From Piromyces finnis finn (Eukaryota; Fungi; Neocallimastigomycota): DNA of 64,000 nt. Under the pieces are notes generated by a model. The model was not told the origin of the DNA, searched no databases, and saw nothing but the letters and a program-made list of their open reading frames with translations. The stretch spans positions 1-64,000 of the forward strand of contig MCFH01000096.1 of the NCBI GenBank assembly GCA_002104945.1. The letters are read 5' to 3'. The position numbers and the translations under genes are program-made. Below, one piece after another: positions 1,677-57,083 of the stretch (position 1 is its first letter; every line of letters starts with the position of its first letter).

Positions 1677-1743
1677 AATTATATCATTTAATTGATATGC
1701 TACTCCCATAAAAACATAATAAAAATAGTTGAATAAATACGAT

Positions 1744-2736: not shown

Positions 2737-2771
2737 ATAATCTTTACCCGCTGTTTAGTGGCTACTTTAGA

Positions 2772-3809: not shown

Positions 3810-3832
3810 ATAAAGGACTTCCATTGAAGTCC
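3800..3832 (+). promoter_or_regulatory. -1 ribosomal frameshift signal (A AAA AAC + hairpin GGACTTC-CATT-GAAGTCC)
   Basis: Heptamer 3800-3806 abuts the gag stop. The pol frame is -1 and open through the junction. Perfect 7-bp stem at 3815-3832, 8 nt downstream. Confidence 0.85.
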
Positions 3833-5056: not shown

Positions 5057-5219
5057 AAATGAATGAATAATAATTTTATGAAAATATAACCCTTTCTTAA
5101 ATAAATAATATTCTCTTTATTATATAATAAATTCTGAGTAAAAACGACCTAATAGTGATAATAATAAAATAAATTATTAAATAAATAAAACGACTTAATC
5201 CAATAATGTATTAAAATAA

Positions 5220-8796: not shown

Positions 8797-8839
<43 letters not shown>

Positions 8840-9010
8840 TTATTTTATTATTTTAATAAATTATTGGATTAAGTCGTTTTATTTATTTAATAATTTATTT
8901 TATTATTATCACTATTAGGTCGTTTTTACTCAGAATTTATTATATAATAAAGAGAATATTATTTATTTAAGAAAGGGTTATATTTTCATAAAATTATTAT
9001 TCATTCATTT

Positions 9011-10243: not shown

Positions 10244-12323
10244 TGGAAGTCCTTTATTTAGTTTTTTGAACTAATTTTTTGAGCCTTATAATTGTTGTTA
10301 TAGTAATTATTATTATGTTTTTGGAAGTTATTGCTATTGTTATTGTTATTGTTATAGTTATTGTTATTGTATGGTCTGTGGTGGTTGAAATGTGAATTTC
10401 TTTTCTTGTTAGATTTGGAACTGGAAGACTGGGTAATCTTATTCTTTGTAGAAAGAGAACTTTCAATCAAAATACATCTAGTTATAATGGACTCCATAGT
10501 GGTTGGAAATATCTCCATCTTTTCAATTTCTTCCTGATATTTTGGATGTAACCCATTGTAAAAGATTAAAGATAATGCTTCTTCATTCCATTTAAATTGT
10601 TGCGAAAGAGAGCGGAATTCCTCGATATAATCATTTATTTTACCATATTGTTGTTTTAAACGCATTATTTTGATTTTAGCTATCTTGTAACTAGCAACAT
10701 TGGAGAAAGCAATTCTTAATCCATCCAATAATTCTTGCATGGTAGCTGGATAAATATTATCCTTGTACTTGGCAAGATACCAATTTCTAGCAGCATCACG
10801 AAGACGGGATTGTACAAAATTAATTTTTGTTTCTTCTGGTAAAGTTCGATTTGGTAGAGTTTTAAAAGTATCTTCACATAATTGACAAAATAGATCGGTC
10901 TCACTAGTCTTACCGGAAAACATACCTAGATCTGGGACTTGAGTAATTGGAGTAGCAAAACGACCTCTCATGATAACATCATGATCTAAATCAAATCTTG
11001 TTGAAGTAGACTCATCATCTCTAAAGGCATTAGGTCTTGGAGTAGCTATCCTATCATAGTTGGTATGTAACAATGGATGTTCATCTTCATTCTGAGTAGC
11101 TTGACTATTATTCATACTTGTTAATATTCCCATGATTTCATTTAAACGATTATTTACATCATTGGAAAAATTTTGAAAATCTTCACGGAAAACCAAATTT
11201 TCATTGATACCCTCAATGATATCTTTGGCAGTCTAAGTAGCATCCTCTCTAAGTTGGTTTATTTCGTCTGGGAATTTAGGAACTGGAGTGAACATTCTAA
11301 AGTAGCCACTAAACAGCGGGTAAAGATTATTGTAAAGTTTTTGGATTTGGTTATGCGGCCAGGTCAGAATGTTATTAATTATATAGTAAATATGTTTTTT
11401 AAGAAATTAAATTTAAATGTACAATAACACTTTAAACTTCCAAATGAAAAATTAACATTTATTCTTTAGAATAACTTTTTTATAAAATTTTATTTATTTA
11501 GTAATAATAATATAAATGATAATATATTTAATAACTATATAATTAAGATTATAACTATAATCTTTACAAAGAATTAAAATCGAATTCAAATCATTCTATT
11601 TTATATTCTTTGTTCAGATTATTAAATTGATAAAAATAAAGTATTACATGTAATATATTAATAATATAATAAGATTGTTTGTTTGTTTGTTTGTTTTGTC
11701 ATGACATAAAATAAAGTAAACATATGATTAATCATTTAAACACTTGATCCATTAACCTATTTTATAATAATTAGAATTATTTAATTTATAAATGTTAACT
11801 GTTACACCTAAATGGTTTAGTTCTATCTTTAGTAACAGTTACTAACATTAATTAAATTAATATAATTAAAATTTCTATTGATATATTTTTAATTTTTGTC
11901 AAGTCATAAGAAATGTCTATGATCCATACTTGATATCATATTGATTTTAATTTACCTATTAAAATCTTTAAATGACCATATCTTCCTTAAATGACCAGTT
12001 AGAAGGACCGCGATTGTACCAAAATATAGCTTTTCCCTTAAGCTTTCTAATAAACCTGGTTTCACAGCCGTAGCACTTACAGCCGTAACGCTCGTTTTTG
12101 ACGAGTTATGCGTAGTTTCGTATTTGTTTATTTTTGGCTAAGGGTTATAGTGTATTGATATTAAATTTTTTGAAATCATAACCCTTTCACTGAATCAAAA
12201 TTTAAAAGGTGACTTTTAAAGGTGTTTTAAAATAACTGTTGGGATTATTTAATTATAATTATTATGTTTAATTAATTATAGATATTATCTGAATTTGTTT
12301 TAAATCCAGTTAATATCTTCGCA
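9031..12323 (-). mobile_element. Ty3/Gypsy element A, copy 2 (mirror of copy 1; LTR 11331-12323)
   Basis: Reverse complement of 1744-5036. Confidence 0.9.
10258..11295 (-). pseudogene. gag: gag of Gypsy A copy 2 with premature stop (11233-11235)
   Basis: Mirror of 2772-3809. Confidence 0.9.
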
Positions 12324-12390
12324 ATCGTATTTATTCAACTATTTTTATTATGTTTTTATGGGAGTAGCATATCAATTAAATGATATAATT

Positions 12391-14319
12391 TGATAATAAT
12401 CTTAATTTTGAATTTTACTTCAAAAAGTGATTATTATATTATATCTTTGAGTATAACTATATAAGTTATATGGATTAGGAATTAAAATTGTTTTTGTAAA
12501 AATTAATAAAGTTGTTTTATTAGAAACACTTGTTTTCCTAATATTTAAATATTTAAAATTTTATTTATTTAAGTATAAAAGTGATTATTAAAATTACAAA
12601 AATATTAACTAAACTATATAATATTTCTTTATTATTAATAATAATAATGATTAAAAATGAGAATATTTACATGTATTTATATTTTCTTTTAAATTTAAAC
12701 TATTTACATTAAAACAATAAAATTAATAACTATTTACAATAAAAGTAATAAAAGTAATTAGAAATAACAATAAAAGAAATAATTAAAAGTTAAAGAATAT
12801 AAAAAGTTGTTTATTTTACAATTAATTAAAGTAATAATTATTTTTAATGTTTTAATAAAGGTGTTTAATTATATTATTTTATAACATGAATTATTATATT
12901 TGTTTACTTTTAAAGTGTAATTTACTAACGAAGTTATTAAATATTTAATTTAACAATTAATTTAACAAAAGTTATATATTTTGATCTCGATTAATTAAAG
13001 TTTATTATTTTCTTTCAATAATCAAAATATATGCAGTGTTTAGGATTAATTTCATTTTAGAATTTTGGTAAAGTACTTAATTAAACTATAACTTATTTTA
13101 AGTTACTTTTAGGGTTAACTTAAAAATCAGGTTTAATAATAATTTTATATTTATTAATTTCATTATTTATCAATTTGATGCGTTGACCGATATATTTTTG
13201 AATAATATAATGTTTTTAATAAATAATAAATTCTATATTATTATGATGAAACAATAAATTTAAAATAAAATAAAAATATGTTTTATAATTAACAAATAAA
13301 TCACTCAAAACTCGAAAATAAACTCTTATTATGTTTTAAATTAAATCTTTATTATATTTTATAATTTATTTATTATCTGTTTATGGTCTTTTTATTCTCT
13401 ATTTATTGTCCGCCCTTTATAAAGAAGAATTTTATCTTCCTTTTATACATTTTCATTTATTACATGTATTATTATTTTTAACTATTAAATATTATTATTA
13501 CTATTGTTATTATTTATTAAAATTAAAAGAATAAATTAGAATTATGTCTTAGTATTATAAAATATTATAGAATATTAATTATTTGATTTTCTTATTACTT
13601 CAAAATGTTTAAATTTAGAAAAATTATTATAAATTATCATTGACTATCATTAAATGTATAATACCTTGAATAAAATAATTAAAATTTAAAATTAAAATAA
13701 TATTAAAATAAAATTAAAATGAAATTAAAATATTAAAAGTATCAATTATTATAAACACTCATTTTATACAGAAACATAAAAGAGTTCTGTATTTTATCTT
13801 TGGAATTGTTATTATTGTTCTATTTCCAGGTTTTAAGTTTATCATTTTAGTAATAATTACTCAATTAGTTATTTATTAACTTATAAGTTTAAGAGAATTT
13901 CTAAAGAACACTTGGATAAACACTAGAATTAATGATTTGATGTATACCATTTTATTTTTAGTTTATTTATTCATTTTTATTTATTTATTATTATTTTATT
14001 ATTTTAGTACATTATTGGATTAAGTCGTTTTATTTTATTTAATAATTTATTTTATTTAATAATTTATTTTATTATTATCACTATTAGGTCGTTTTTACTC
14101 AGAATTTATTATATAATAAAGAGAATATTATTTATTTAAAGAAAGGGTTATATTTTCATAAAATTATTATTCATTCATCTTTAAGGGTTATATTTTCATA
14201 AAATTATTATTCATTCATCTTTAAGGGTTATTATTGTTTATTTTTATTATAAGTTACTATGGGTTAAGTCGTGTTTATTCAGCTAGTTTTTATCATGTTT
14301 TTATGTGAGTAGCGTATCA
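12391..14319. mobile_element. Solo LTR X2 (1929 bp) with 4-bp TSD AATT
   Basis: TGATA...TATCA terminal inverted repeat; AATT at 12387-12390 and 14320-14323; a 40-bp tandem duplication at ~14143-14222. Confidence 0.7.
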
Positions 14320-14323
14320 AATT

Positions 14324-15155
14324 TGCTACGGTTCAAATAAGATATCACAAAACACTTGAATAGTTATAAAAATAAAAATTTATTTAATTTTAATTTTTAT
14401 TCATTTAATTTATTTTTGATTTTTCAATTTTTAAAAATTTTCTCAAAAATCCTCGTACTTTTTCCAACTATCCATTATTTGAAATTTAATGGTTTTGGAT
14501 AGCTAAGGATTTAAATTGATTTCATTCATAATATATGGATCATTCACTATAACATATATTAATTAAATCCTTAATATATATTATGAATAATCTCTTAATA
14601 TTTGAATAGAAAATTTTTTAATTTATAATTAATAAAATTTTAATTTATGATATGTGTAACATTTTTGCATATCATATATTATATATTTTATTATGACATA
14701 TAATAAAATTATATTATTCAATTAATTATGCCCTTTTTTAGACATAAATAATAATTTTTCTGTCGAGGTATCTTCTGTTTTGTGTGTAACAGTTGCCTCT
14801 TTTAGTAAAAATTATAATTAAATTCTATGTCATAATTTCAAATTATAAAATATTATACAATAAAGTTAATTAATAAAATAAACCTTAAATAATAATAAAA
14901 TTTTGTAAAATTTATAAGTATAAAATATTATAAGTAATTATACTAATACTAATAATAAAGGTCTTAAATAACTATATACAAATAATATAACTATATAATA
15001 AAAATATGAATAATTACTAGAAAAATGTATAAAAATTATATATTATAATTTTTATATTTTAAAAATAGAGTTAAACACTAGTAAGGAATATAAATAGTTG
15101 AAGGTTAATTCCTAAAATTCTAGCTAATTCAACTATTTATGTTCATTCCTTAACA
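14324..15155 (-). repeat. 3' LTR of Gypsy C1
   Basis: TGTTAAGGAA...CCGTAGCA on minus; purine-rich tract GAAGGGCATTC immediately upstream (15156-15166). Confidence 0.95.
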
Positions 15156-15179
15156 GAATGCCCTTCGTTAAAACTCAAG

Positions 15180-18100
15180 CTACTCCGTTGCTGAGTTATA
15201 TTTAACGACATTTTTGAAATGTACATTTCTGTTCATTAGTACTCCAGTTTCTGGGTCTGCTAAGACTACTGTATTGAACTGTTTCTGGACCACTTTGAGA
15301 GGTCCTACAAAGTAAGGTTCCAATTTTGTTCTACTGAAGTTTCTTACCAAAACTAGGTCACCTACTTTTATTTTCTTAGCTTGGTTCATACTTAATTTTT
15401 CTTCTCTTCTCATAGACCAATATTTATTAGCCGTCTTTACATTTTCAGCAGCTTCTAGGGTCCATCGGTAGTGATTTATAAACTTTTCCAAAAGAATTTC
15501 ATCGGAACTCTTGTTTTGATCTTTAGTGGGTCGGGCAGCTATATCAAAAGGTTGTTGGTCTTCCCTACCATAAACTAGCTCAAAACTTGAATGTTTCGTA
15601 GCCGTATTCTTTGTAGTTCTTAAGGCCCAAAGCGCGGAAGGTAGAACTTCATCCCAGTCTTTACTTTCTTTCCCTAAAAGTCTTAAAAGTTTCCCAATTT
15701 CCTTATTTCGGTTTTCTGTTAATCCATTACTTTCAGGGTGGTAGGGAACTGTGAACTTCACATATACGTCATATAGGTCTAGAAATATCTTTGTCATATC
15801 TGAGGTAAATTGAGTTCCATTATCTGTAGTAATAACTTGTGGTACCCCATGTCTTGCAAACACATTTATTAAAAACTTTATCACGTCCAGAGAAGTAACA
15901 GTTTCCACCGCTTCGGCTTCTACCCATTTAGTAAAATAGTCAACTATGACTATTATATATTGTTTACTATTTCTTGTCTTAGGTAATGGCCCAATAATAT
16001 CCAAACCTAGATGTACAAATGGTCCTTCCACTTTAGTAGCTTTGTCCTCAGTTGGTTCTGGATAAGGTTGTGGTCTATTTACTTGACACTTCTCACACTT
16101 GCTAATAATTCTTTTAATATCCGCTATCATATCATTCCAATAATAATTTTTCTTTAACCTTTGATAAGTCTTATAATAACCTTCATGACCTACGTTATGT
16201 GCTTGAAATATTAACTTTACTTTTTCTTCTACAGTAGATATTAGCTGACGTAAGTTATTACCATCTACGAAATAGTCCTTCCCATCTATGGTAGTAAATT
16301 TTTCAGCTATAAACTCCTTAATAACTTTGGTTAATAACTCTTCATTATTAGTTTTATTAATTTTTGTTACCAGTATCTTTTTCTCCTCTTTATTCTTCAT
16401 TCTTGATAATGCATCAGCTATAACATTATTCTTTCCTTTATCATATTGAATATCAATATCCAACTGACTTACTGTAAGACACCATCTGTTGTGACGTGCA
16501 CTATTTGGTTCCTTATTTTTAAATAAACCCAAAAGTGGTTTATGGTCCGTATAAACCATAGTAGTGTACGGGTTTCCTAAAATATAAGGTTTTAACTTAC
16601 TCACGCAAAAGAATAACGCAGCACCTTCTAACTCTGTTATTCCATAGTTCTTCTCCGCTTTACTAAGACTTCGACTAATATAATGTACCGGGTGTTCTAT
16701 TTTGTTAGTTTCATCTTCTTGTAATAAAACACCACCCACTCCTTCATACGACGCGTCCGTACGTATGATAAAAGGCTTATCAAATTCAGGAAACTTTAAA
16801 ATGGGAGCGTTTATCAGTTTTTCTTTTAATACTTTAAATGCTTTTTCATGTTTTTCTTCCCATTTATATCGTACATTTTTCTTTAATAACTCACATAAGG
16901 GCGCGGTTACTTGAGAATAATTAGGAATAAAATTTCGATAATATCCTACTGCACCCAAAAATGAACGTAACTCATGAATATTTCCTGGAGCTTCCCACTT
17001 CCTTATGGCTTCTATTTTACTTTCCAAAGGACTCAAACCTTTAGTAGATAACCTGTGACCTAATACATTTACTTCTTCCTTCATAAAACTACATTTCTCA
17101 AGATTTATTTTTAATTCATTTTCTTTCAATATTTCAAATACTCTCTTAATATGTTCCATGTGTTCTTCCACACTCTTGGAATATATGAGTACATCATCAA
17201 TAAAATTATATACACAATTTCCTATTAAAGGAAATAATATCTTATTCATTTCCCTCTGAAAAGTTGCTGGTGCATTAGTTAACCCAAACGGCATGACCTT
17301 AAACTGATAGTTACCAAACTTGGTAGTAAAACTAGTAACCTCAGTGCTTTCCTCATGCATAGAAATTTGATGATAACCTGAATATAAGTCCATAGTAGTG
17401 AATATTTTGGCTCCGTTCAGACTATCAAATATTTCATCAATATAGGGGAGTGAATAAGAGTCCTTTTCCGTGAGGTCGTTCACTCTCCTATAGTCCACAC
17501 ACATTCTCCACTTACCATTATGTTTTGGAACCAGAACTACAGGGGAGGACCATTCTGAATAGGACGGCTCTATTAACTTTTTTTCTATTAGCTTAGTTAA
17601 CTCTTCTTTTAGTATATCTGATTTAAATTTAGTTAACCTATAAGCTCTTTGTTTAACTGGTTTTACACCAGCCTTTAGATTTATTTTATGTGGTGATAAT
17701 TTAGAAGGCGTTAATTCCTCAGAAGACGTCGCAATAATCTCTAAGTTTTCTTCCAAAAGTCGGAGTATTTCTTTCCGTTTATCTTTTGGTAAGGTGTTCA
17801 AGAATATCTCATTGTGTATATACTCCTGAGGTGGTAAACCTTCAATAGACTTCAAGCTTTTAGTATCTCCATCTGGTATCTTCTTAATAGTACATACCAA
17901 TTTTCCTTCATTATAATATTGGTTATTGATAGGTACTATTTCTTCTACTACACCTCTTTCTTTCACTTGACATAAGCTCTTGGTTACTGGATTTATATAT
18001 AATAAATTATCTACTTGAGTTTTATAATTTATTAACATATCATAGAACGGTTCTTCTTTTTCAAGTATTCTGAAGTCAACCACTAGTTCTACCTCTCCTA

Positions 18101-19157
18101 TTCTAACTGGTATACACACCACAGTACCCTCAGAGTATTCTTCATCAGTAGTAGCTAGTCGAATACGTCCTTTGCTTATTCCTACCACTTCATATTCCTT
18201 TGGTAGTCTTTTGTAAAAAGAAGATGTAATAACATTTAAGTTACTACACGTATCCACCAGTAGTTTTCCTGGTATTCCATCCACAGTCGCATCCACCATT
18301 GCTATATCCTCTTCTGAAGCTTCATTATTCTTACTTATATAGTCATGGTAGATATTATTTAATAAGGTTGTAGTAGCTACTATGTTATTTAATGCACCTG
18401 ATACCTTGCTTTGTACTTTCTCTAACTTTAGTCCTTGGGAAAGTTGTGTTCTTATTTTTGGGCATACATTAAATAACTGTCCATAAGTAATATCACATTT
18501 AGCTGTGTTTAAATCTTCAAAAATATCATAATCACTGGTATCACCTCTCATTTGGATATTACGTGTGACTTTCTCCTCTTTAGTTTTATCTTTTTCTTTA
18601 TCTTTAGTCATTTTCAATAACGTCGGTAGAATATCTGTATTTTTCTTTTTAGCTTTTTCTACTTCTACTTTATCTTCCGTATCAATACTGACCTCCATAT
18701 CTTCGTTTTCTTCTCTTTCGTCTTTATTTATGGGGGTTGGTGGTTTACTTCTTTGTTTTTCTCTGAGTCTTTTACTTTTTTCTTTTTCCTTGTTAATATT
18801 AGGTTGACTCAGAACAGACGTGTCAAGTTGGTTCTTGGGTTGTGATGGTGAACCTGATTCTAAACTCTCATTACTGAGTTCACGTTCTTGTTGCTTCCTA
18901 GTAGCAGGGGTAACTATTGGTCTTGGGTCTTCTTTTAATGATTTTTGTACTCTTTTCTTGGAAGAGTCTTCTTCATCATTAGCTTTTCTTTTAGCTGCAG
19001 CAATAATTTTATCTTCAATAGAAGATATTTCTTCATTATCTGATAAGTCAGAATACTCAGAATATTCAGAGTACTCATTATTATCAACTGAACTGTTATT
19101 AAGTGAAGCTATTTTTGGATTACTGGGAGTGCTTCTTCTCCCACTATCTAATTTAAA
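15180..19157 (-). CDS. pol: pol of Gypsy C1 (PR-RT-RH-IN with GPY/F motif, no chromodomain), reached by -1 frameshift
   Basis: Track ORF 15180..18698; the frame stays open up to the T TTA AAT heptamer (19151-57). Motifs VDTCS, FIDDVL, TDASYEG, LDIIGP, TDNGTQF, PYFVGP. Confidence 0.93.
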   Translation of the reverse strand, partial: FKLDSGRRSTPSNPKIASLNNSSVDNNEYSEYSEYSDLSDNEEISSIEDKIIAAAKRKANDEEDSSKKRVQKSLKEDPRPIVTPATRKQQERELSNESLESGSPSQPKNQLDTSVLSQPNINKEKEKSKRLREKQRSKPPTPINKDEREENEDMEVSIDTEDKVEVEKAKKKNTDILPTLLKMTKDKEKDKTKEEKVTRNIQMRGDTSDYDIFEDLNTAKCDITYGQLFNVCPKIRTQLSQGLKLEKVQSKVSGALNNIVATTTLLNNIYHDYISKNNEASEEDIAMVDATVDGIPGKLLVDTCSNLNVITSSFYKRLPKEYEVVGISKGRIRLATTDEEYSEGTVVCIPVRIGEVELVVDFRILEKEEPFYDMLINYKTQVDNLLYINPVTKSLCQVKERGVVEEIVPINNQYYNEGKLVCTIKKIPDGDTKSLKSIEGLPPQEYIHNEIFLNTLPKDKRKEILRLLEENLEIIATSSEELTPSKLSPHKINLKAGVKPVKQRAYRLTKFKSDILKEELTKLIEKKLIEPSYSEWSSPVVLVPKHNGKWRMCVDYRRVNDLTEKDSYSLPYIDEIFDSLNGAKIFTTMDLYSGYHQISMHEESTEVTSFTTKFGNYQFKVMPFGLTNAPATFQREMNKILFPLIGNCVYNFIDDVLIYSKSVEEHMEHIKRVFEILKENELKINLEKCSFMKEEVNVLGHRLSTKGLSPLESKIEAIRKWEAPGNIHELRSFLGAVGYYRNFIPNYSQVTAPLCELLKKNVRYKWEEKHEKAFKVLKEKLINAPILKFPEFDKPFIIRTDASYEGVGGVLLQEDETNKIEHPVHYISRSLSKAEKNYGITELEGAALFFCVSKLKPYILGNPYTTMVYTDHKPLLGLFKNKEPNSARHNRWCLTVSQLDIDIQYDKGKNNVIADALSRMKNKEEKKILVTKINKTNNEELLTKVIKEFIAEKFTTIDGKDYFVDGNNLRQLISTVEEKVKLIFQAHNVGHEGYYKTYQRLKKNYYWNDMIADIKRIISKCEKCQVNRPQPYPEPTEDKATKVEGPFVHLGLDIIGPLPKTRNSKQYIIVIVDYFTKWVEAEAVETVTSLDVIKFLINVFARHGVPQVITTDNGTQFTSDMTKIFLDLYDVYVKFTVPYHPESNGLTENRNKEIGKLLRLLGKESKDWDEVLPSALWALRTTKNTATKHSSFELVYGREDQQPFDIAARPTKDQNKSSDEILLEKFINHYRWTLEAAENVKTANKYWSMRREEKLSMNQAKKIKVGDLVLVRNFSRTKLEPYFVGPLKVVQKQFNTVVLADPETGVLMNRNVHFKNVVKYNSATE

Positions 19158-20068
19158 TGACCTTTTCTGGCCTTTTGTTTGTTTTCTTCTACTATGGCAC
19201 TCAGCTTAGGACAATGATATTGAAAGTGTCCCTTCTCGTTGCAAAAGTAGCAAGTTTTGATAGTTAAGTTTCTCATTTTCTCCGTCAACTCATTCATAGG
19301 ATCTTTCTTATCATTACCATAATTCGCTATTGTTGGCTTCTTGTTCCTTTCATAGCTATCTTCTTTTCTTTCATATTTATTTTTATATCTTTTATCAGAG
19401 TTAGAAGAGGTGGATACATCATAATTGTTAGCTTTATGACGATTTCTTAAATTTAGTCTGTCCCCATCTTCGGCAAGCTTGTAGGCTTCTGCTAAGGTAA
19501 CTTCTTTTTCCCTACGCACATTTTCCCAGGCTTTATAGTTAGGCTCAATGGAATCTAAGTAATCTTCAACATCTACTTTCCTTCTACGCTTCTTGTCTAG
19601 TTTGACATACAAGGAACGGTACCTTATGTTGAAGTCTTTTACTTTTTCATTCTTTTTGATTCGCATATCCCTAAGCTCCTTGAGAAGTTCTATTTGATCT
19701 TCCTTTACTCCATAAAATTCTTCTAACATAGTGACTATCTTTTTAAGGGAAGGGTAGTGAGCTCTTCTCTTTCCTCTACCTTCATCTTCTTCATCACTAT
19801 CTTCACTGTCTTCATCACTTTCGAAGTCCTTATTAGGATTCAACTCTTGAATAAGTTCATTTGGTGTTCCTGTAGTAGTAAACAAACAAGCTAGAAACAC
19901 CATTTTTGGACTTTTAACATCTTGAAGCATAGTCCAATACTTTAATTGACTATACCAAGTCTTAATGTCCAAATTATCTTCGGTTAATCTAGTGACATGC
20001 TTTAATTCCTTCATTAATTTAGCAAAGTCAATAGATTTATCAGCTCCCGTACTCATTTTTATATACAA
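19148..20068 (-). CDS. gag: gag of Gypsy C1 with CCHC zinc knuckle
   Basis: CYFCNEKGHFQYHC near the C-terminus. The true start is probably the ATG of MSTG. Confidence 0.9.
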   Translation of the reverse strand: MYIKMSTGADKSIDFAKLMKELKHVTRLTEDNLDIKTWYSQLKYWTMLQDVKSPKMVFLACLFTTTGTPNELIQELNPNKDFESDEDSEDSDEEDEGRGKRRAHYPSLKKIVTMLEEFYGVKEDQIELLKELRDMRIKKNEKVKDFNIRYRSLYVKLDKKRRRKVDVEDYLDSIEPNYKAWENVRREKEVTLAEAYKLAEDGDRLNLRNRHKANNYDVSTSSNSDKRYKNKYERKEDSYERNKKPTIANYGNDKKDPMNELTEKMRNLTIKTCYFCNEKGHFQYHCPKLSAIVEENKQKARKGHLN

Positions 20069-20448
20069 GTTTTAAATAAAGATAAAAATACAATTTTACA
20101 ATAATATTAAAGAATGAAACAAGTTTAAAAAAAAAATAATTTTCTTTTATAAGAATTTAAAAGAATGAATTACAACAATATTTGAAATATATTTAATTAA
20201 CAACACTAATAATTATTCTCTTTAGTTAAACTAGTAATACCAATATAAAATACTTCCTTAACTGCACCAATTAACAATATTAATTTCTCTCTATTAACTA
20301 TTTTAATTGTGCCTTGAAGTATATAACTTTTTATTATACTAGTATAACCCTCTTTTGAATTATTAACTATTTTAATTAAATAATAATACAAAAATAAATA
20401 TAAAAATAACTATAAAAATGTAGTGTGATATCAATATGTTATTATTAT

Positions 20449-20465
20449 CCCCGATATCTCCACCA
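20449..20465 (-). promoter_or_regulatory. PBS of Gypsy C1, complementary to a tRNA-Ala-type 3' end
   Basis: TGGTGGAGATATCGGGG; implied tRNA end ...TCTCCACCA has A73 and U70 (Ala identity). Confidence 0.8.
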
Positions 20466-20472
20466 TTAATTA

Positions 20473-21304
20473 TGCTACGGTTCAAATAAGATATCACAAA
20501 ACACTTGAATAGTTATAAAAATAAAAATTTATTTAATTTTAATTTTTATTCATTTAATTTATTTTTGATTTTTCAATTTTTAAAAATTTTCTCAAAAATC
20601 CTCGTACTTTTTCCAACTATCCATTATTTGAAATTTAATGGTTTTGGATAGCTAAGGATTTAAATTGATTTCATTCATAATATATGGATCATTCACTATA
20701 ACATATATTAATTAAATCCTTAATATATATTATGAATAATCTCTTAATATTTGAATAGAAAATTTTTTAATTTATAATTAATAAAATTTTAATTTATGAT
20801 ATGTGTAACATTTTTGCATATCATATATTATATATTTTATTATGACATATAATAAAATTATATTATTCAATTAATTATGCCCTTTTTTAGACATAAATAA
20901 TAATTTTTCTGTCGAGGTATCTTCTGTTTTGTGTGTAACAGTTGCCTCTTTTAGTAAAAATTATAATTAAATTCTATGTCATAATTTCAAATTATAAAAT
21001 ATTATACAATAAAGTTAATTAATAAAATAAACCTTAAATAATAATAAAATTTTGTAAAATTTATAAGTATAAAATATTATAAGTAATTATACTAATACTA
21101 ATAATAAAGGTCTTAAATAACTATATACAAATAATATAACTATATAATAAAAATATGAATAATTACTAGAAAAATGTATAAAAATTATATATTATAATTT
21201 TTATATTTTAAAAATAGAGTTAAACACTAGTAAGGAATATAAATAGTTGAAGGTTAATTCCTAAAATTCTAGCTAATTCAACTATTTATGTTCATTCCTT
21301 AACA
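20473..21304 (-). repeat. 5' LTR of Gypsy C1
   Basis: Same 832-bp sequence as 14324-15155. Confidence 0.95.
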
Positions 21305-21321
21305 AATTAAATTAATTATTA

Positions 21322-21403
21322 GTTACTTTGGCGGAGTGGTTAACGCGGTGGCCTGCTAAGCCATTTCCCTTTGGGAGCGCAGGTTCGAGTCCTGCAGGTG
21401 ACG
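21322..21403 (+). tRNA. tRNA-Ser(GCT)
   Basis: Acceptor GTTACTT/AGGTGAC, anticodon arm GTGGC-CTGCTAA-GCCAT, long variable arm, GGTTCGAGTCC T-loop; 82 nt. Confidence 0.97.
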
Positions 21404-21413
21404 AATAGTTATT

Positions 21414-21486
21414 GCGAAGTTGGCGCAGTCGGCAGCGCGTAAGTCTCATAATCTTAAGGTCGTGAGTTCGAACCTCACACTTCGCA
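21414..21486 (+). tRNA. tRNA-Met(CAT), elongator type
   Basis: Acceptor GCGAAGT/ACTTCGC + A; anticodon arm TAAGT-CTCATAA-TCTTA (U:U pair as in yeast elongator Met); GTTCGAAC T-loop; followed by TTTT. Confidence 0.96.
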
Positions 21487-24032
21487 TTTTATTATTGGGT
21501 TTATACTATATTTTAATTATTAAAAGTATTAAAGAAAGAAATTTAAAAAGTATTTCAATTACTTTAATATTTTTATTTTATAATCTATTTATTTTATTGC
21601 ATAATTATAATATGTCTTGACGTTATTAGTTTATAGATAATGATAAATAAATTGAAATGCTAATTTTATTTCTAATATATTTTAGATAATAATTAATTAA
21701 ATATATTTATTTAAATTATTTATTTAAATATAACTGCTTTAAAAGTATACATAGCTTTTAACTAAATGTTAATTAATAATGAAACATAAATTATAATTAA
21801 AAGTATAATTGTATAAATTATTTGTTTATTTAAAATACTATTAAGATCGAGTAATTGTTACATTATTTTTTTTTATTATTTATTTATTAATATTCAACTA
21901 AGAATATATTTATTATTTCTGTTATCTTTATTTTAATATGTAATTTAAATTATATTCATTATATAAAACTATATTAACAGTCAAAATTTATCAACCAGAA
22001 ACAATTTTTATTAAGGAAAGGCATAAAACTAATAAATTGATAAATTATTATGATTATATTTAAAGCTAATTTCAAATAGTGTCTTATTAATTCAATTCAA
22101 AAATTATTTCAAATGATTATTGGTAAAAAAATTTTAAAAAAAATTAATTTATTAAAAATTAAAGTCAATTATAATCCTTTAATAAAATAAATAATACATA
22201 AAATGAATAATATCCTCCAAAATTCACACACTACCGTCATTTTCTAAAAGAACTTAAACTATCTTTTCTTGCTCTAGCTTTCAGTTACATACTAATATTT
22301 ATAAGAGTTATAGTAATATAACATTTTGATTATTTAAATTAGTATAGAAGATATATGTTATAAGTCTATATTGGCTTGATAACTATTCATCACATTATTA
22401 CATTTTTTAATTAATATAATAATATTACTAAAAGTAAAATCTCAATATATACTTATTTATATGCCTATTTATATGGTTAATCATTATTTATGAAATAATA
22501 AACTATAAACTGTATTTACTATGAATATAAAAGTTGTCATTTTTTAAAACTTTTAAAATTAAATATTTATTTATTAAAATCTTCAAGATAGGGTTTAGAT
22601 AATTAGTAAGAATGAATTAGAAGCCATAAATATTTATTAATACTTTTATTGCTTTTTATTATTACAAATTTATATAACAAATGACTAATTATTAAATAAT
22701 TTATAATTTATTTTTAAAGTTATGACTTAAATTAATATATAATAATCTATATTACTTAATGTTAAATTAATTATATATTAAAATCAAATAATTTTTTAAG
22801 TTAAAATTAGAAAGCTATAAACATAGTTGTTTATACACAAGAAATAATTTTTATTATTAAAAACTATTGATGAATATTTTTAATTTAGAAATAGTTAAAC
22901 ATTACCCAAATAAAATGAATCATTTTAAAATATTAACTATGATACAATAATATAATGTAATATAAATAAAAATAGAAAAATAGAAATATTGTTTTAATTT
23001 TATTTAATAATTTAGTAAGTTTGTAGAATAAATTAGTAAAAACAATCTGGAATATATAATATATCACTTTCTGTATAATTTATAAAACTAAAACATATTA
23101 ATTTAGCATTTATTTATAATAAAGAAGGCATTAATAATATAATTTTTATTATCAATATATCAATAAGTAGTTTTATCTTTCATAAATATAAATGAATTTA
23201 TAATAGTTTATTTAAATAATAGTTTTATTTAGTTATTTAATTAAATAAAGCTTTATTATTTAATAGTTTAGGAGATTATTAATTATATTATGGTTATAAA
23301 ATATTTTATATCAGTATAAAACGTCTTTATTTACTTAATTTAAAAGAAAATTAAAAATAATTTAAAACGATTATTCTTAAATTACATAATCAAAATCATT
23401 AAATAAATTAGTTTTAACTAATCATAAATAAGAGATTTTACTTTCCTTTAAGAAATCAAAGTTCATAATTATAAAATAATTATAATATAATTATTTATTC
23501 ATATATCCACATCCACATATAGTTACATAAAAAAAAAATATTTTGTTGATAAAGTATAGTCATTATATGTTAAATAGTAATAACAATAATAATAATTGTA
23601 GTTGGAGTGAAACTCATTAATATATATTTTTGCTTTTTATATAAATATAATTTAAATTTCACACATTTTTCGACTTTGTTAAAATTATAATGAAATAATT
23701 TTATATTTTATTTACTATTAATTAATTATATAATTATATATTATTTAAATTTTTATGTATTAATTAAATTAATTATATGAAAAGTATAATTTTATTTAAT
23801 ATTATATAAATATATATTTTTTACTATTATTAAAATGTAGTTCTTTTCATAATATAAGAAAAGACATTATTAAATAACTTGTATTAAATAATAATAAATA
23901 TTAATAACAAATATTAATAAATAAATAATAATAAATAAATATAAAATAATATATATACATATTATACAAATATTTATTTATAAAGTGTTGGTGTTATATA
24001 AAATATTATAATAATAATATTTAATCATAAAA

Positions 24033-33560: not shown

Positions 33561-34402
33561 TGGAAAATGTTTTCAAGGATTAAATCATCAAGTATATTTA
33601 TCACGTGGTTGACATTCTGATTGGTCAGTGTTTATGTTTGTGTAACATTTATTTTCAGGGATGGAAATTTTTGGATCATACATTTTTTCATTACTCTTAA
33701 TTTCATTTTCAATATTATCGGCAGAAGGTCCAAACATTGTATTGATTTCTTCAAAGCATGGAGTACTATCCGAGGTTGTCTCGTTCTCAATATTAGAACA
33801 ATATTTGTCGTCCTTTGATTTTCCTTTGTTTGGTTAAGTTTTATAATTTTCGTTAAATTTATTATTTTTCTTGGTTCTGGTTGAACGGCTGGGGTTATAA
33901 TAGCAATCCTTGGCCAAGTGTCCCGGAATGTCACAGATAACACAGTATTTGTTTCTGTGATATTGTTTTGTATTTCTTCTATTTCCATTTGAACGTTTTC
34001 CTTCTATATTGTCTATATCCATATAGTCATTGTTTGAATTTTTGAAGTTGTTGATGAATGGGTTATTATTTTTTCTTATGTTTCTAGGGTTAAAATTGCT
34101 ATTTCTTTGGTTGTGGGTTTGGTTATTATTGTATTCCATTTGGTAGAGAATAACTGTATATCTATCTTTTATAATTTCATATAGTGTTTCTGGTGTATAT
34201 TGGGAACTCATTAGTATTTTATCCTTAAGGATGTTTGGTAGAGCGTTGTACATAATTGTTATTTTTTCCATGTTTGATTTGTTCATGCATGAGTTTTCGA
34301 GTAAATTAAATAACTCCATAATCTCATTCATGACATTCATGGTTTCCTTAAGGTTGGTAGCCTTGAGAGATCCTAATCTTCTTAACCACTCTCCATGGTT
34401 AG

Positions 34403-34829
34403 TGTAACGAGAACTAGTGAGAACCACTAGGTTGTTGTAGGAAATAATAATAAATAAAATAAATAAATAAATAAAAACACAAAATTAGATAAACGATATT
34501 ATTTAGGATTTTATACTATTTTATTTATTATTATTCAATGTTAATAATAGCTCAAAGAGCATAAAATAAAAATAATACATGGTCATTTATATTCGTTAAT
34601 TCTAATTCTATAATACATGATTGGATTTTACATTAATATAAAATTTATCTATTCTATAATTATTCATACATTTAATTTAAATATAATTTATCTAACTATT
34701 CATTTAATTAAAATATAAATTATAAAAAGTAAATAATAGGATTCGAACCAGTGACAAAATCCATACTAAACCAAAGCCAGGTACCATTGAGCTATCCTAA
34801 TGGTTATAACGGTACTTGATATCGTTACA
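34403..34829. mobile_element. Solo LTR S1 (427 bp) with 5-bp TSD GTTAG
   Basis: 8-bp TIR TGTAACGA/TCGTTACA; GTTAG at 34398-34402 and 34830-34834; second copy at 44462. Confidence 0.9.
34724..34801 (-). promoter_or_regulatory. tRNA-type Pol III promoter (A-box TAGCTCAATGG, B-box GGTTCGAATCC, T5) inside LTR S1
   Basis: A-box T at 34794 and B-box second G at 34748 are 46 nt apart (45 in a standard tRNA); T5 at 34724-28; no cloverleaf. Function is not demonstrated. Confidence 0.7.
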
Positions 34830-35156
34830 GTTAGGAGTCATCCAGTTTGTACAAGCTCGAGTTTCTCCATCTTCTCATATGCGGACTCACAGTTCATAAT
34901 GTACCTTTTAACAGAGTCGGTACAATTTGTAAAAATGATAATTCCTGCGAGTGCATCATTTGGTTCAAATTTGCTTGGTTCATTGAATGTTTTGTAGTTA
35001 CTCTTGATGTAACCACCAAGCTGTTTGGCCCTTAAGTAGCCTTCAATTGTACAGTACCATATATCAAAGTTGGAACTGCCTTGTAATTTATCCCTTTCGC
35101 TTAATATGAATTCAGGCATTTTATTTATATTTTATAATATTTCTTTGTGAGCCAGT

Positions 35157-35626: not shown

Positions 35627-35698
35627 AGGGGCGTTCCGGATTTGAACCGAAGACCTATTGATCTGCAGTCAATTGCTCTACCGCTGAGCTAACACCCC
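35627..35698 (-). tRNA. tRNA-Cys(GCA)
   Basis: GGGGTGT/ACGCCCC acceptor, ATTGA-CTGCAGA-TCAAT anticodon arm, GGTTCAAATCC; 72 nt. Confidence 0.97.
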
Positions 35699-44461: not shown

Positions 44462-44804
44462 TGTAACGAGGAACTAGTGATAACCACTAGGTTGTTGTAG
44501 GAATTAATAATAAATAAAATAAATAAATAAAAACACAGAATTAAATAAATATTATTATTTGGATTTTATATTATTTTATTTATTATTATTGAATGTTAAT
44601 AATAGCTCAAAGAGCATAAAATAAAAAATAATTCATGGTTTTTATATTCAATATATCTATTCTAAATTACATGATTGGTTATTACATAAAAATATAACAA
44701 TATTAATTTTATAAAAAGGAAACAGTCAGATTCGAACCAATGACAAAATCCATATCAGACTACGACCAGTACCATTGAACTATCAAAGCCGTTATAACGA
44801 TACT
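44462..44804. mobile_element. LTR S2 (diverged copy of S1), interrupted 13 bp from its end
   Basis: Starts TGTAACGAG; aligns to S1 up to ...ATAACG(G/A)TACT. A-box TAGTTCAATGG (T at 44782) and B-box GGTTCGAATC (second G at 44737) on minus, 45 nt apart, then T5. Confidence 0.88.
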
Positions 44805-45510
44805 TGTTAAGGAACCAACAAATAATGTTATTCTTGTCATAATTAATGATTATGACCTAATCCATTATTGTTCCTAAATGTATGAAAACTTTACAATATT
44901 CTTATTTGTAAATTAATGTATACACTTAAATTATATTTAAAATTATTAATAATTATTTTTATTGAACTTAAATTTTATTTTATTAAACTTAAAAATTAAT
45001 TTAGTAATAATAATATATTGAAAATTATAGTTTATTGAACTTTTAGTTTAATTTATCAAGTTAATGAATTTTTATTAATTAAAATTATGAATAATATTTC
45101 TGTAAAATAGTAAAATTCTTTAGTTAAATATATTTAAAGTAAACTTTTAATGTATGTTAATCAATTTAATAATATGTATAAATATTTATTATAATAGTAA
45201 TGTAATTTTATTATTCATTTAAAAGTAATTTAAATACTAAAATTAATGTAAATAATTAAAGACTAATTCTTTTAATTAACACTACTTAATTTTTTACAAA
45301 AAGTATAAAAAGGTGTATATTATAAGAATTAGAGAATAGACAGATATTTTTATTTTTATTTTTATTTTATTTTATAATTTTATATTAATATCTTAATAAA
45401 ACAATTTTATTAATAAAACAATTTTTCTTATTTCATTTTAATATTATTTTTGAGTATTAATAAATTTATTAATATTTTATAAATAAAAGTAAATTCCTCG
45501 AACCGTAACA
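44805..45510 (+). mobile_element. Solo LTR C' (706 bp; C-related) with 4-bp TSD TACT
   Basis: TGTTAAGGAA...GAACCGTAACA termini like C; TACT at 44801-04 and 45511-14. Confidence 0.85.
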
Positions 45511-45514
45511 TACT

Positions 45515-48500
45515 TGTTAAGGAATGAACATAAATAGTTGAATTAGCTAGAATTTTAGGAATTAACCTTCAACTATTTATATTCCTTACTAGTGTTTAAC
45601 TCTATTTTTAAAATATAAAAATTATAATATATAATTTTTATACATTTTTCTAGTAATTATTAATATTTTTATTATATAGTTATATTATTTGTATATAGTT
45701 ATTTAAGACCTTTATTATTAGTATTAGTATAATTACTTATAATATTTTATACTTATAAATTTTACAAAATTTTATTATTAAAATAGTTATAGGTATTTTA
45801 TTATTATTTAAGGTTTATTTTATTAATTAACTTTATTGTATAATATTTTATAATTTGAAATTATGACATAGAATTTAATTATAATTTTTACTAAAAGAGG
45901 CAACTGTTACACACAAAACAGAAGATACCTCGACAGAAAAATTATTATTTATGTCTAAAAAAGGGCATAATTAATTGAATAATATAATTTTATTATATGT
46001 CATAATTAAATATATAATATATGATATGCAAAAATGTTACACATATCATAAATTAAAATTTTATTAATTATAAATTAAAAATTTTTCTATTCAAATATTA
46101 AGAGATTATTCATAATATATATTAAGGATTTAATTAATATATGTTACAGTGAATGATCCATATATTATGAATGAAATCAATTTAAATCCTTAGCTATCCA
46201 AAACCATTAAATTTCAAATAATGGATAGTTGGAAAAAGTACGAGGATTTTTGAGAAAAATTTTAAAAATTGAAAAATCAAAAATAAATTAAATGAATAAA
46301 AATTTAAAATTAAATAAATTTTTATTTTTATAACTATTCAAGTGTTTTGTGATATCTTATTTGAACCGTAGCATAATTAATGGTGGAGATATCGGGGATA
46401 ATAATAACATATTGATATCACACTACATTTTTATAGTTACTTTTATATTTATTTTTGTATTATTATTTAATTAAAATAGTTAATAATTCAAAAGAGGGTT
46501 ATACTAGTATAATAAAAAGTTATATACTTCAAGGCACAAATTAAAATAGTTAATAGAGAGAAATTAATATTGTTAATTGGTGCAGTTAAGGAAGTATTTT
46601 ATATTGGTATTACTAGTTTAACTAAAGAGAATAATTATTAGTGTTGTTAATTAAATATATTTCAAATATTGTTGTAATTCATTCTTTTAAATTCTTATAA
46701 AAGAAAATTATTTTTTTTTAAACTTGTTTCATTCTTTAATATTATTGTAAAATTGTATTTTTATCTTTATTTAAAACTTGTATATAAAAATGAGTACGGG
46801 AGCTGATAAATCTATTGACTTTGCTAAATTAATGAAGAAATTAAAGCATGTCACTGGATTAACCGAAGATAATTTGGACATTAAGACTTGGTATAGTCAA
46901 TTAAAGTATTGGACTATGCTTCAAGATGTTAAAAGTCCAAAAATGGTGTTTCTAGCTTGTTTGTTTACTACTACAGGAACACCAAATGAACTTATTCAAG
47001 AGTTGAATCCTAATAAGGACTTTGAAAGTGATGAAGACAGTGAAGATAGTGATGAAGAAGATGAAGGTAGAGGAAAGAGAAGAGCTCACTACCCTTCCCT
47101 TAAAAAGATAGTCACTATGTTAGAAGAATTTTATGGAGTAAAGGAAGATCAAATAGAACTTCTCAAGGAGCTTAGGGATATGCGAATCAAAAAGAATGAA
47201 AAAGTAAAAGACTTCAACATAAGGTACCGTTCCTTGTATGTCAAACTAGACAAGAAGCGTAGAAGGAAAGTAGATGTTGAAGATTACTTAGATTCCATTG
47301 AGCCTAACTATAAAGCCTGGGAAAATGTGCGTAGGGAAAAAGAAGTTACTTTAGCAGAAGCCTACAAGCTTGCCGAAGATGGGGATAGACTAAATTTAAG
47401 AAATCGTCATAAAGCTAACAATTATGATGTATCCACCTCTTCTAACTCTGATAAAAGATATAAAAATAAATATGAAAGAAAAGAAGATAGCTATGAAAGG
47501 AACAAGAAGCCAACAATAGTGAATTATGGTAATGATAAGAAAGATCCTATGAATGAGTTGACGGAGAAAATGAGAAACTTAACTATCAAAACTTGCTACT
47601 TTTGCAACGAGAAGGGACACTTTCAATATCATTGTCCTAAACTGAGTGCCATAGTAGAAGAAAACAAACAAAAGGCCAGAAAAGGTCATTTAAATTAGAT
47701 AGTGGGAGAAGAAGCACTCCCAGTAATCCAAAAATAGCTTCACTTAATAACAGTTCAGTTGATAATAATGAGTACTCTGAATATTCTGAGTATTCTGACT
47801 TATCAGATAATGAAGAAATATCTTCTATTGAAGATAAAATTATTGCTGCAGCTAAAAGAAAAGCTAATGATGAAGAAGACTCTTCCAAGAAAAGAGTACA
47901 AAAATCATTAAAAGAAGACCCAAGACCAATAGTTACCCCTGCTACTAGGAAGCAACAAGAACGTGAACTCAGTAATGAGAGTTTAGAATCAGGTTCACCA
48001 TCACAACCCAAGAACCAACTTGACACGTCTGTTCTGAGTCAACCTAATATTAACAAGGAAAAAGAGAAAAGTAAAAGACTCAGAGAAAAACAAAGAAGTA
48101 AACCACCAACCCCCATAAATAAAGACGAAAGAGAAGAAAACGAAGATATGGAGGTCAGTATTGATACGGAAGATAAAGTAGAAGTAGAAAAAGCTAAAAA
48201 GAAAAATACAGATATTCTACCGACGTTATTGAAAATGACTAAAGATAAAGAAAAAGATAAAACTAAAGAGGAGAAAGTCACACGTAATATCCAAATGAGA
48301 GGTGATACCAGTGATTATGATATTTTTGAAGATTTAAACACAGCTAAATGTGATATTACTTATGGACAGTTATTTAATGTATGCCCAAAAATAAGAACAC
48401 AACTTTCCCAAGGACTAAAGTTAGAGAAAGTACTAGGCAAGGTATCAGGTGCATTAAATAACATAGTAGCTACTACAACCTTATTAAATAATATCAACCA

Positions 48501-50140
48501 TGACTATATAAGTAAGAATAATGAAGCTTCAGAAGAAGATATAGCAATGGTGGATGCGACTGTGGATGGGATACCAGGAAAACTACTGGTGGATACGTGT
48601 AGTAACTTAAATGTTATTACATCTTCTTTTTACAAAAGACTACCAAAGGAATATGAAGTGGTAGGAATAAGCAAAGGACGTATTCGACTAGCTACTACTG
48701 ATGAAGAATACTCTGAGGGTACTGTGGTGCGTATACCAGTTAGAATAGGAGAGGTAGAACTAGTGGTTGACTTCAGAATACTTGAAAAAGAAGAACCGTT
48801 CTATGATATGTTAATAAATTATAAAACTCAAGTAGATAATTTATTATATATAAATCCAGTAACCAAGAGCTTATGTCAAGTGAAAGAAAGAGGTGTAGTA
48901 GAAGAAATAGTACCTATCAATAACCAATATTATAATGAAGGAAAATTGGTATGTACTATTAAGAAGATACCAGATGGAGATACTAAAAGCTTGAAGTCTA
49001 TTGAAGGTTTACCACCTCAGGAGTATATACACAATGAGATATTCTTGAACACCTTACCAAAAGATAAACGGAAAGAAATACTCCGACTTTTGGAAGAAAA
49101 CTTAGAGATTATTGCGACGTCTTCTGAGGAATTAACGCCTTCTAAATTATCACCACATAAAATAAATCTAAAGGCTGGTGTAAAACCAGTTAAACAAAGA
49201 GCTTATAGGTTAACTAAATTTAAATCAGATATACTAAAAGAAGAGTTAACTAAGCTAATAGAAAAAAAGTTAATAGAGCCGTCCTATTCAGAATGGTCCT
49301 CCCCTGTAGTTCTGGTTCCAAAACATAATGGTAAGTGGAGAATGTGTGTGGACTATAGGAGAGTGAACGACCTCACGGAAAAGGACTCTTATTCACTCCC
49401 CTATATTGATGAAATATTTGATAGTCTGAACGGAGCCAAAATATTCACTACTATGGACTTATATTCAGGTTATCATCAAATTTCTATGCATGAGGAAAGC
49501 ACTGAGGTTACTAGTTTTACTACCAAGTTTGGTAACTATCAGTTTAAGGTCATGCCGTTTGGGTTAACTAATGCACCAGCAACTTTTCAGAGGGAAATGA
49601 ATAAGATATTATTTCCTTTAATAGGAAATTGTGTATATAATTTTATTGATGATGTACTCATATATTCCAAGAGTGTGGAAGAACACATGGAACATATTAA
49701 GAGAGTATTTGAAATATTGAAAGAAAATGAATTAAAAATAAATCTTGAGAAATGTAGTTTTATGAAGGAAGAAGTAAATGTATTAGGTCACAGGTTATCT
49801 ACTAAAGGTTTGAGTCCTTTGGAAAGTAAAATAGAAGCCATAAGGAAGTGGGAAGCTCCAGGAAATATTCATGAGTTACGTTCGTTTTTGGGTGCAGTAG
49901 GATATTATCGAAATTTTATTCCTAATTATTCTCAAGTAACCGCGCCCTTATGTGAGTTATTAAAGAAAAATGTACGATATAAATGGGAAGAAAAACATGA
50001 AAAAGCATTTAAAGTATTAAAAGAAAAACTGATAAACGCTCCCATTTTAAAGTTTCCTGAATTTGATAAGCCTTTTATCATACGTACGGACGCGTCGTAT
50101 GAAGGAGTGGGTGGTGTTTTATTACAAGAAGATGAAACTA
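45515..50140 (+). mobile_element. Gypsy C copy 2, truncated in RNase H (5' LTR 45515-46373; PBS 46381-97)
   Basis: Near-identical to C1; its LTR is ~27 bp longer; homology ends at ...GATGAAACTA 50140. Confidence 0.93.
46778..47698 (+). CDS. gag: gag of Gypsy C2
   Basis: Near-identical to 19148..20068. Confidence 0.9.
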   Translation: MYIKMSTGADKSIDFAKLMKKLKHVTGLTEDNLDIKTWYSQLKYWTMLQDVKSPKMVFLACLFTTTGTPNELIQELNPNKDFESDEDSEDSDEEDEGRGKRRAHYPSLKKIVTMLEEFYGVKEDQIELLKELRDMRIKKNEKVKDFNIRYRSLYVKLDKKRRRKVDVEDYLDSIEPNYKAWENVRREKEVTLAEAYKLAEDGDRLNLRNRHKANNYDVSTSSNSDKRYKNKYERKEDSYERNKKPTIVNYGNDKKDPMNELTEKMRNLTIKTCYFCNEKGHFQYHCPKLSAIVEENKQKARKGHLN

Positions 50141-56239: not shown

Positions 56240-57083
56240 TGTCACGAATACTAGTGAAAATACAATTTCAAGATCACTTGGAATTGTGAAATCACTTATG
56301 AAAATTCAAAATCAACAAATATTTTATTTTCAAGTAAATTATAAAATTTTATTAAGAAATATTTAAAAATTTAGGAAAGGTTAAAATATGACCTTAACCC
56401 TTAATAATTTTTATAATAAATAACTTTAACCCTTATCGTTAAAATGGAATAAGGAAAAACACGCGTATCTCCTCAACGAATGACGATTTTTGAATAAAAA
56501 TGTTTTGGTTATAATTACGTTCGTTAGAAAGCCACGCTCGAGACAAACAACATATCTTAAAATCAGGTCAATATCTCTGCTGGTTCACGAGATATTCCAA
56601 TTTAAAGATATTTTGTTAGCAATGATTAATTGTTTATTCAGAGAATGATCACCCCTGATATATCAAACATAAATCATTCACTCAAAGTATAAAAATTATT
56701 GTTTAATTAAATTAAAATTATTAACTATAAATTATTAACTATAAATTATTAACTATGAATTATTAACTATAAATTATTAACTATAAATTATTAACTATGA
56801 ATTATTAACTATAGATTATTAACTAGAAATTATTAACTATTAATAATAATTAATACTTAATGAGTATTACTACTAAATAATCTTATTATTATATTTTAGC
56901 AATATATTATTAAATAAAATAAAAGAAATTATTTTAACCATAATATATAATTTAATTATTCATTTATAAATCAATTAAGATTATTTTAATAAAATATTTT
57001 TTTTTTCTAACCTAGTTATCTTTTAACCTTTTATTTAATTTGATATTTTAATATTAAATTATAAGTTTAGTAAAACTTTTACA
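56240..57083. mobile_element. Solo LTR H (844 bp) with 5-bp TSD AAAAT
   Basis: TGT...ACA; AAAAT at 56235-39 and 57084-88; removing it restores D'. Confidence 0.8.
56715..56840 (+). repeat. 14-bp minisatellite AAATTATTAACTAT x9
   Basis: Nine contiguous units counted. Confidence 0.95.

Follow-up and report, generated by a model that had tools for sequence, protein, structure and literature searches.

The window analysed here is a 64,000-nt stretch of Piromyces finnis DNA (contig MCFH01000096.1, positions 1 to 64,000, forward strand). Its G+C content is 24%, and almost throughout it consists of LTR retrotransposons nested in one another. The features that concern us are two copies of an LTR named S, the elements C1 and C2, a solo LTR named C', and a tRNA-Ser gene with its tRNA-Met neighbour (Table 1). 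Genome-wide searches were performed on the 56.46-Mb assembly of 232 contigs, in which the window is contig C229.

Table 1. Positions of the S copies, the elements inserted beside Pol III promoters and the tRNA genes in the window
Feature	Coordinates	Strand	Remarks
C1 AATT duplication, copies	14320-14323 and 21305-21308		
C1, full-length Ty3/gypsy element	14324-21304	-	4-bp duplication AATT
tRNA-Ser(GCT)	21322-21403	+	genuine Pol III target of C1
tRNA-Met	21413-21487		9 nt past tRNA-Ser
S1 5-bp duplication CTAAC	34398-34402 and 34830-34834		
S1, complete solo LTR S	34403-34829	-	427 bp
S1 B box	34740-34749		
S1 A box	34784-34794		
S1 TACT	34813-34816		single
S2, remnant of LTR S	44462-44804	-	from alignment to S1
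S2 T5 run	44713-44717	-	about 11 nt past B box, the tRNA-gene terminator position
S2 B box, GGTTCGAATC	44729-44738	-	44 nt past A-box T, tRNA-gene spacing
S2 A box, TAGTTCAATGG	44772-44782	-	A-box T 22 nt from C' junction
TACT target-site duplication, proximal copy	44801-44804	+	S positions 14-17
Solo LTR C'	44805-45510	+	706 bp; U3 start toward S2
TACT target-site duplication, distal copy	45511-45514	+	
C2 5' LTR	45515-46373	+	
C2, Ty3/gypsy element	45515-50140	+	gag and part of pol

At S2, the order of features is TACT, C', TACT and C2. As the first-pass annotation of this DNA had noted, TACT is single in S1 and doubled around C' in S2, and C2 begins right after the second TACT with its 5' LTR. 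C' starts with TGTTAAGG and ends with CCGTAACA. S2 covers S positions 14-427 and belongs to a subtype with an internal deletion; when the head of S was searched for across the window only S1 matched, so the first 13 nt of S2 are absent from the window. The distance from the junction to the A-box T is 22 nt at S2 versus 24 nt for C1 at tRNA-Ser, and the U3 end is toward the promoter in C1, C' and C2, again as annotated. For C1 the orientation comes from gag and pol, which run away from tRNA-Ser and thus place the U3 start facing the gene; for C' and C2 it comes from the homologous end. C2 had also been described as intact-looking, which did not hold: the element is truncated at 50140, where another element cuts it, and the 3' LTR is part of the ~2.4 kb that is missing. 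The order of the two insertions at S2 had been left undecided. We consider it likely that C2 inserted first and C' then entered the same TACT, because the distance to the promoter acts as a fixed ruler and the reverse order would place the target of C2 700 bp from the S module. The site upstream of tRNA-Ser, where C1 ends 17 nt from +1 and 24 nt from T8, is stacked likewise: another LTR end, AATT, C1 and AATT.

The ends of S1 are inverted repeats (TGTAACGA..TCGTTACA), and this LTR interrupts a copia gag; the same copia gag is present without S in a public contig, which represents the empty site. Where the 3' end of an S copy was recovered, the DNA that follows differs from copy to copy, and no direct S-S pair was found among the S copies, indicating that S survives only as solo LTRs. 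Two other identities for S were ruled out. It is not the 5' LTR of the neighbouring copia, since S1 interrupts the copia gag and owns a 5-bp duplication, and it is not a tRNA-derived SINE, given the TGTAACGA..TCGTTACA ends, the 5-bp duplication and the lack of an A-rich or LINE-like tail. From S position 29 onward, the LTR has the geometry of a tRNA gene. The A box occupies positions 36-46 (A-box T at 36) and the B box positions about 81-91, with GGTTCGAATCC 44-45 nt past the A-box T and then about 10-11 nt to a T5 run. Between the two S subfamilies, which are otherwise 78% alike in this module, the T-run and both boxes are conserved and what lies between the boxes varies.

The pol of C1 has the domain order Asp_protease, RVT_1, RT_RNaseH, Integrase_H2C2, rve, which is the Ty3/gypsy order; no chromodomain match was found in C1 pol, and the closest named relatives of its polyprotein are Orpinomyces proteins. 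C and C' are young, high-copy families. At least 131 candidate copies of C' were found at ~100% identity, with full-length pairs ~7.2 kb apart, and a 17-mer pattern found 185 LTR starts of C and C' together across the genome. A pattern in which a B-box core follows the LTR start of C or C' after 55-85 nt gave 50 matches, versus 0 for the reversed control. About 30 of the 50 were ordinary tRNA genes, at which the LTR end lies 14-17 nt from +1; the others were S2 (once), the LTRs T1 and T2 described below (~16) and another Pol III-like sequence (~6). In a sample of 76 tRNA-Cys/Ala/Thr-type genes, which includes some tandem duplicates, at least 72 were preceded by an LTR whose end lies at about -11 to -19, and at least 12 families were represented upstream of these genes. 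C or C' was present at 12 of the 76, and the end involved was the U3 start, not the U5 end, every time; wherever either was observed at tRNA genes the U3 start was toward the gene. These tallies, and those for the T copies below, were judged by eye from the 63-80 nt printed for each pattern match. We conclude that Pol III genes are targets of both C and C'. Upstream of real tRNA genes the sequence varies from gene to gene and is unlike that of S, and the distance to the A box is constant.

A census of S, in which BLAST and pattern search agreed, yielded 14 scorable copies. Twelve of these are interrupted at S positions about 9-20, i.e., 17-24 nt upstream of the A-box T, although these junction counts are upper bounds because some copies may have been counted twice through assembly or segmental duplication, as is the case for S1 and the C206 copy, which represent one event. 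The intact independent copies are S1 and a copy on C230+. At least seven LTR families abut the broken copies: C' at S2, C at an S-like head (C156:1018097), F twice, G twice, H and L, with further LTR ends from J, K and others, at least three families being unnamed. For the copy on C170, the missing S(1-13) was found 3 kb away. No second interruption elsewhere was seen in the interrupted S copies; a few separate fragments of S do occur. The proposal in the first-pass annotation that S serves as a landing pad would have lost its ground if no other S copy were struck at this position, which was not the outcome, and the proposal is supported. The position recurs at other S copies and the family varies: C and C' were found only at S2 and at the S-like head, and the remaining insertions belong to other families.

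In our samples, C and C' keep a strict orientation. Other families do not all do so: G was found both ways, the C170 copy being a case in point, and at C181 the U5 end of a gypsy element abuts S. One of the S insertions is by H, a family without tRNA targeting. Family E was observed about 50 nt inside abutting LTRs, in what looks like a second register. Both unstruck S copies have good boxes, and some struck copies have damaged boxes, although these mutations may postdate the insertion. A separate repeat of a different family, which shares only the B-box half of S, was struck in 0 of 5 copies.

T1 and T2 are LTRs that start with TGTAAYGAAT and carry an A box and a B box of their own; T1 also has a long T-run. 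An 18-nt piece of the module matched 135 T1/T2 copies. Among the first 100 of these copies listed, 20 are 3' LTRs that follow a polypurine tract, with partners 5.4-6.1 kb off, and 41 have a foreign LTR end at T positions 2-12. The insertions in T lie 19-23 nt from the A-box T, involve nine named families and form no fewer than 34 different junctions. Matching near-side junctions to far-side ones, at which the T head meets a C or C' U5 end, revealed the 4-bp duplications AATA, AATC and GAAT; the inserts in these pairs are solo LTRs or 7-8 kb elements. Reversed-pattern controls for the T searches gave 0 matches. Within the T pairs, a search for RVT_2 (copia) found no match inside 11 pairs among the 150 candidates scored, and a gypsy RT query found none inside clean 5.4-6.1-kb pairs among the 103 of 1497 candidates scored. 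One 5' LTR of T1 precedes a degenerate same-strand gypsy gag-pol, which is suggestive only.

As a control we used LTR H, which starts with TGTAAAGATATCA compared to TGTAACGATATCA in S, one base apart, and has no module. H is interrupted in 1 of the 100 copies listed, and its head is intact in the other 99. By Fisher's exact test, the difference from H is p ~1e-13 for T and p ~2e-13 for S. Chance nesting in a transposon-rich island, which the almost wholly nested content of the window might suggest, has a negligible probability in our judgment, given that 12 insertions fall within one 16-nt stretch of the 427-nt LTR (~8e-18 under uniform insertion), that H is so rarely struck and that the reversed patterns have no matches.

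We also asked whether the S and T modules could be real, if unusual, tRNA genes, in which case there would be no decoy. The A box, the B box, their spacing and the T-run are all tRNA-like. However, ARAGORN made no tRNA call on the S or T modules, and the Rfam tRNA model RF00005 gave no match on them at E up to 1, versus 68 bits for a neighbouring tRNA-Cys. Furthermore, the halves of the T-stem are not complementary, and the modules reside inside repeats with TG..CA ends. Real tRNA genes at these positions are therefore extremely unlikely. We conclude that the first 100 nt of S contain a decayed copy of a tRNA gene that has lost its cloverleaf and retained its promoter geometry, and that S resembles a tRNA gene at the promoter level only. 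Because the modules are not tRNAs, what they have in common with the real targets is promoter geometry rather than RNA shape.

It is conceivable that what the integrases prefer is the local sequence with which S begins (around ATCAAGTA) and not a Pol III complex. The insertions do crowd into a short AT-rich stretch, and the duplications are AT-rich 4-mers. Yet H, whose first 13 nt are nearly identical, is almost unstruck, which excludes a preference for LTR ends in general and speaks in the same way against one for local sequence. In addition, the sequence upstream of tRNA genes varies and the A-box distance does not, and the head of T1/T2 differs from that of S while the insertion distance is the same. 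We thus regard a preference for local sequence as very improbable.

Real tRNA genes, S and T have only promoter geometry in common, making a Ty3-type explanation the best available. In Ty3, tethering of the integrase at TFIIIB that has been placed by TFIIIC is established (PMC5911963). We think it highly probable that the S module assembles a tRNA-type Pol III complex and that LTR families consequently insert at the equivalent spot, in the manner of Ty3. In such a scheme, TFIIIC on the A and B boxes would position TFIIIB upstream, and the integrase would, most likely by the Ty3 mechanism, be tethered at the TFIIIB/TFIIIC complex. The same complex, if assembled on the S module, would cause S copies to be struck at the equivalent position. 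At S2, C2 would have inserted onto TACT, C' would later have inserted onto the same four bases, and C' would then have recombined to a solo LTR. What we observe are the junctions and their distances, the duplications, the orientation and the enrichment across the genome; the binding of factors, the role of the integrase and any transcription of S are what we infer from them.

A more limited role for the module, in which it binds TFIIIC only (similar to extra-TFIIIC sites) or keeps chromatin open and has no working Pol III promoter, is unlikely, although it deserves more weight than the readings above. In three public RNA-archive runs of uncertain type, available as contigs, no short-RNA start or end was found at S, and this transcript look-up together with the decayed tRNA body is in keeping with a TFIIIC-only module; so is the presence of several families with different registers at the same site. 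(Contigs from the same runs also contain another S copy fused to a G LTR.) On the other hand, the register measured from the A box differs from that at real tRNA genes by no more than 1-3 nt, which fits TFIIIB placed by TFIIIC, and a T-run is kept at the terminator position across divergent S subfamilies. Moreover, sites in yeast that are occupied by TFIIIC alone are not targeted by Ty3 (PMC5911963). Assembly of a tRNA-type Pol III complex on the S module is therefore the reading that we retain.

Pol III-directed integration has been described for Ty3 (Saccharomyces cerevisiae), Tj1 (S. japonicus), Tyl/Ylt of Yarrowia and DGLT-A of Dictyostelium (PMC5911963). Ty3, too, marks non-tRNA Pol III sites (PMC5911963). 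The P. finnis system is like the Ty3 group in that the elements are Ty3/gypsy, insert in a zone only a few bases wide immediately before tRNA genes and stack at one site. It differs in that at least 12 families have the same habit, with C and C' strictly oriented, in the ~95% occupancy of the sampled tRNA genes, and in its host phylum, Neocallimastigomycota, which is new. The target-site duplication of Ty3 is 5 bp, whereas here it is 4 bp.

LTRs with the promoter of a small-RNA gene are known from Helenus, Cassandra and Ajax ('TRIMp3'), as set out in Kojima 2024 (PMC10886601). S is like the Helenus LTRs described there from other fungi in that it contains a tRNA-like segment whose A and B boxes are conserved and that encodes no functional tRNA, in its 5-bp duplication, as in fungal Helenus (CTAAC at S1, one clean case), and in persisting as solo LTRs, which is also true of some Helenus families (PMC10886601). 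In contrast, Neocallimastigomycota is outside the host phyla given for Helenus (PMC10886601). There are also differences from TRIMs. The S copies found are solo LTRs, none of them part of a full-length element with PBS and PPT, and the T1/T2 LTR pairs, at 5.4-6.1 kb apart, are much larger than a TRIM. The first part of the Results and the Discussion of Kojima 2024 make no mention of Helenus-type LTRs as integration targets (PMC10886601). Profiling of TRE5-A in Dictyostelium, in which insertions were read as the footprint of Pol III complexes at non-tRNA sites, is similar to our approach in that integration scars mark non-tRNA Pol III sites (PMC5391098). However, TRE5-A is a non-LTR element and the sites there are fixed rDNA sites (PMC5391098), whereas the sites here are mobile and multiplying.

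Pol III-directed integration and tRNA-like LTRs are thus already known separately. Our literature search found no paper that combines the two, and no report of tRNA targeting in anaerobic fungi. In P. finnis, tRNA-directed integration is extreme, with ~95% of the sampled tRNA genes and at least 12 families involved, and the copies of one mobile element spread landing sites for others. The integration scars would constitute in vivo evidence, obtained without ChIP, that a decayed tRNA promoter in an LTR still assembles Pol III factors.

A further proposal, which we regard as speculative and rather doubtful, is that the promoter modules of S, T1 and T2 are kept by selection in the elements that carry them and form a transposon-on-transposon targeting network. 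If so, the benefit may be that incoming Ty3-like elements are steered into the 5' LTR within 12 nt of its outer end, a place at which little harm would result; alternatively, the modules may have an insulator role, as tRNA genes do. The multiplying modules would then be a second class of integration sites, itself mobile, and would influence the places at which a dozen other families accumulate. With respect to the mechanism that we favor, the assembly of a Pol III complex on the S module, our results suggest that safe landing sites for Ty3-like elements can themselves be mobile and multiply, and they offer a natural system in which to study how TFIIIB/TFIIIC is recognised by integrases and why Pol III promoters occur in some LTR elements.

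Within the LTR abutting S, the 427-bp solo LTR with a decayed tRNA-type promoter (A box, B box and T-run), LTRs of a further family, E, sit at a depth of ~48-55 nt, some 70 nt ahead of the A box; this looks like a second integration register. A pseudo-tRNA module resembling that of S stands at the start of the LTRs of families T1 and T2 and was found at 135 places genome-wide. The two LTRs of a T1/T2 pair are separated by 5.4-6.1 kb, and a polypurine tract (CCTGGAGGAGGACCA) precedes the 3' copy; the flanks of intact copies are fairly G+C-rich, and these copies are not located upstream of tRNA genes.

Two other repeats carry a B box. Insertions of C and C', the Ty3/gypsy families that insert just upstream of tRNA genes, were observed ~15 nt before a repeated sequence starting around CCAGTTTTTATCCTGGTTGTTAAGGCG, which may be an odd tRNA or other Pol III gene. 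A separate repeat, which follows a poly-A run, is common with S over positions about 68-270, B box included, and lacks the A-box half; the sequence upstream of it was identical and uninterrupted in all five of five copies.

Locations of LTRs, repeats and tRNA genes (C plus number, contig, C229 being that of the window; L plus number, extracted genome locus)
Feature	Location	Remark
LTR E	window about 56249-56932	
LTR E inside S-abutting LTR	L010:1857-1950; L040:402-1598	
T1/T2 examples	L035:808-1308; L034:about 9300-9824; L016:about 480-1000	
C/C' insertions before CCAGTTTTTATCCTGGTTGTTAAGGCG repeat	C13:414975; C14:45104; C90:355713; C167:414718; C197:103264	
B-box-half repeat sharing S	C80:6051; C188:161341; C208:139801; C215:98773; C215:153028; also L017-L021	
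tRNA-Cys	C229:77605-77705	
tRNA-Cys	window 35627-35698	LTR end at -11
tRNA-Ser(GCT)/tRNA-Met(CAT)	window 21322-21487	9 nt between genes
Inverted duplication, 5.2-kb	window 4-5219 vs 14064-8848	99.96% identity

The closely spaced tRNA-Ser/tRNA-Met layout resembles that of dimeric tRNA genes in fission yeast. Separately, the arms of the inverted duplication border the left part of the window (1-14064).

At C47, C74 and C79:834264-845464, tRNA-Cys genes whose upstream junctions are identical follow one another at intervals of ~5.57 kb; these look like tandem arrays in which a single LTR element and its tRNA gene make up the repeat unit. Just past the window, three C LTRs (C229:77681, 83856 and 90031) are spaced by exactly 6175 bp, and this trio is a tandem array of C elements that has the tRNA-Cys gene at C229:77605-77705 as its anchor.

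Genome-wide, at least 72 of the 76 tRNA genes sampled (Cys/Ala/Thr-type) were preceded by an LTR terminus lying between about -11 and -19, the termini being drawn from at least 12 LTR families. The sites upstream of tRNA genes are close to saturated by LTR insertions.
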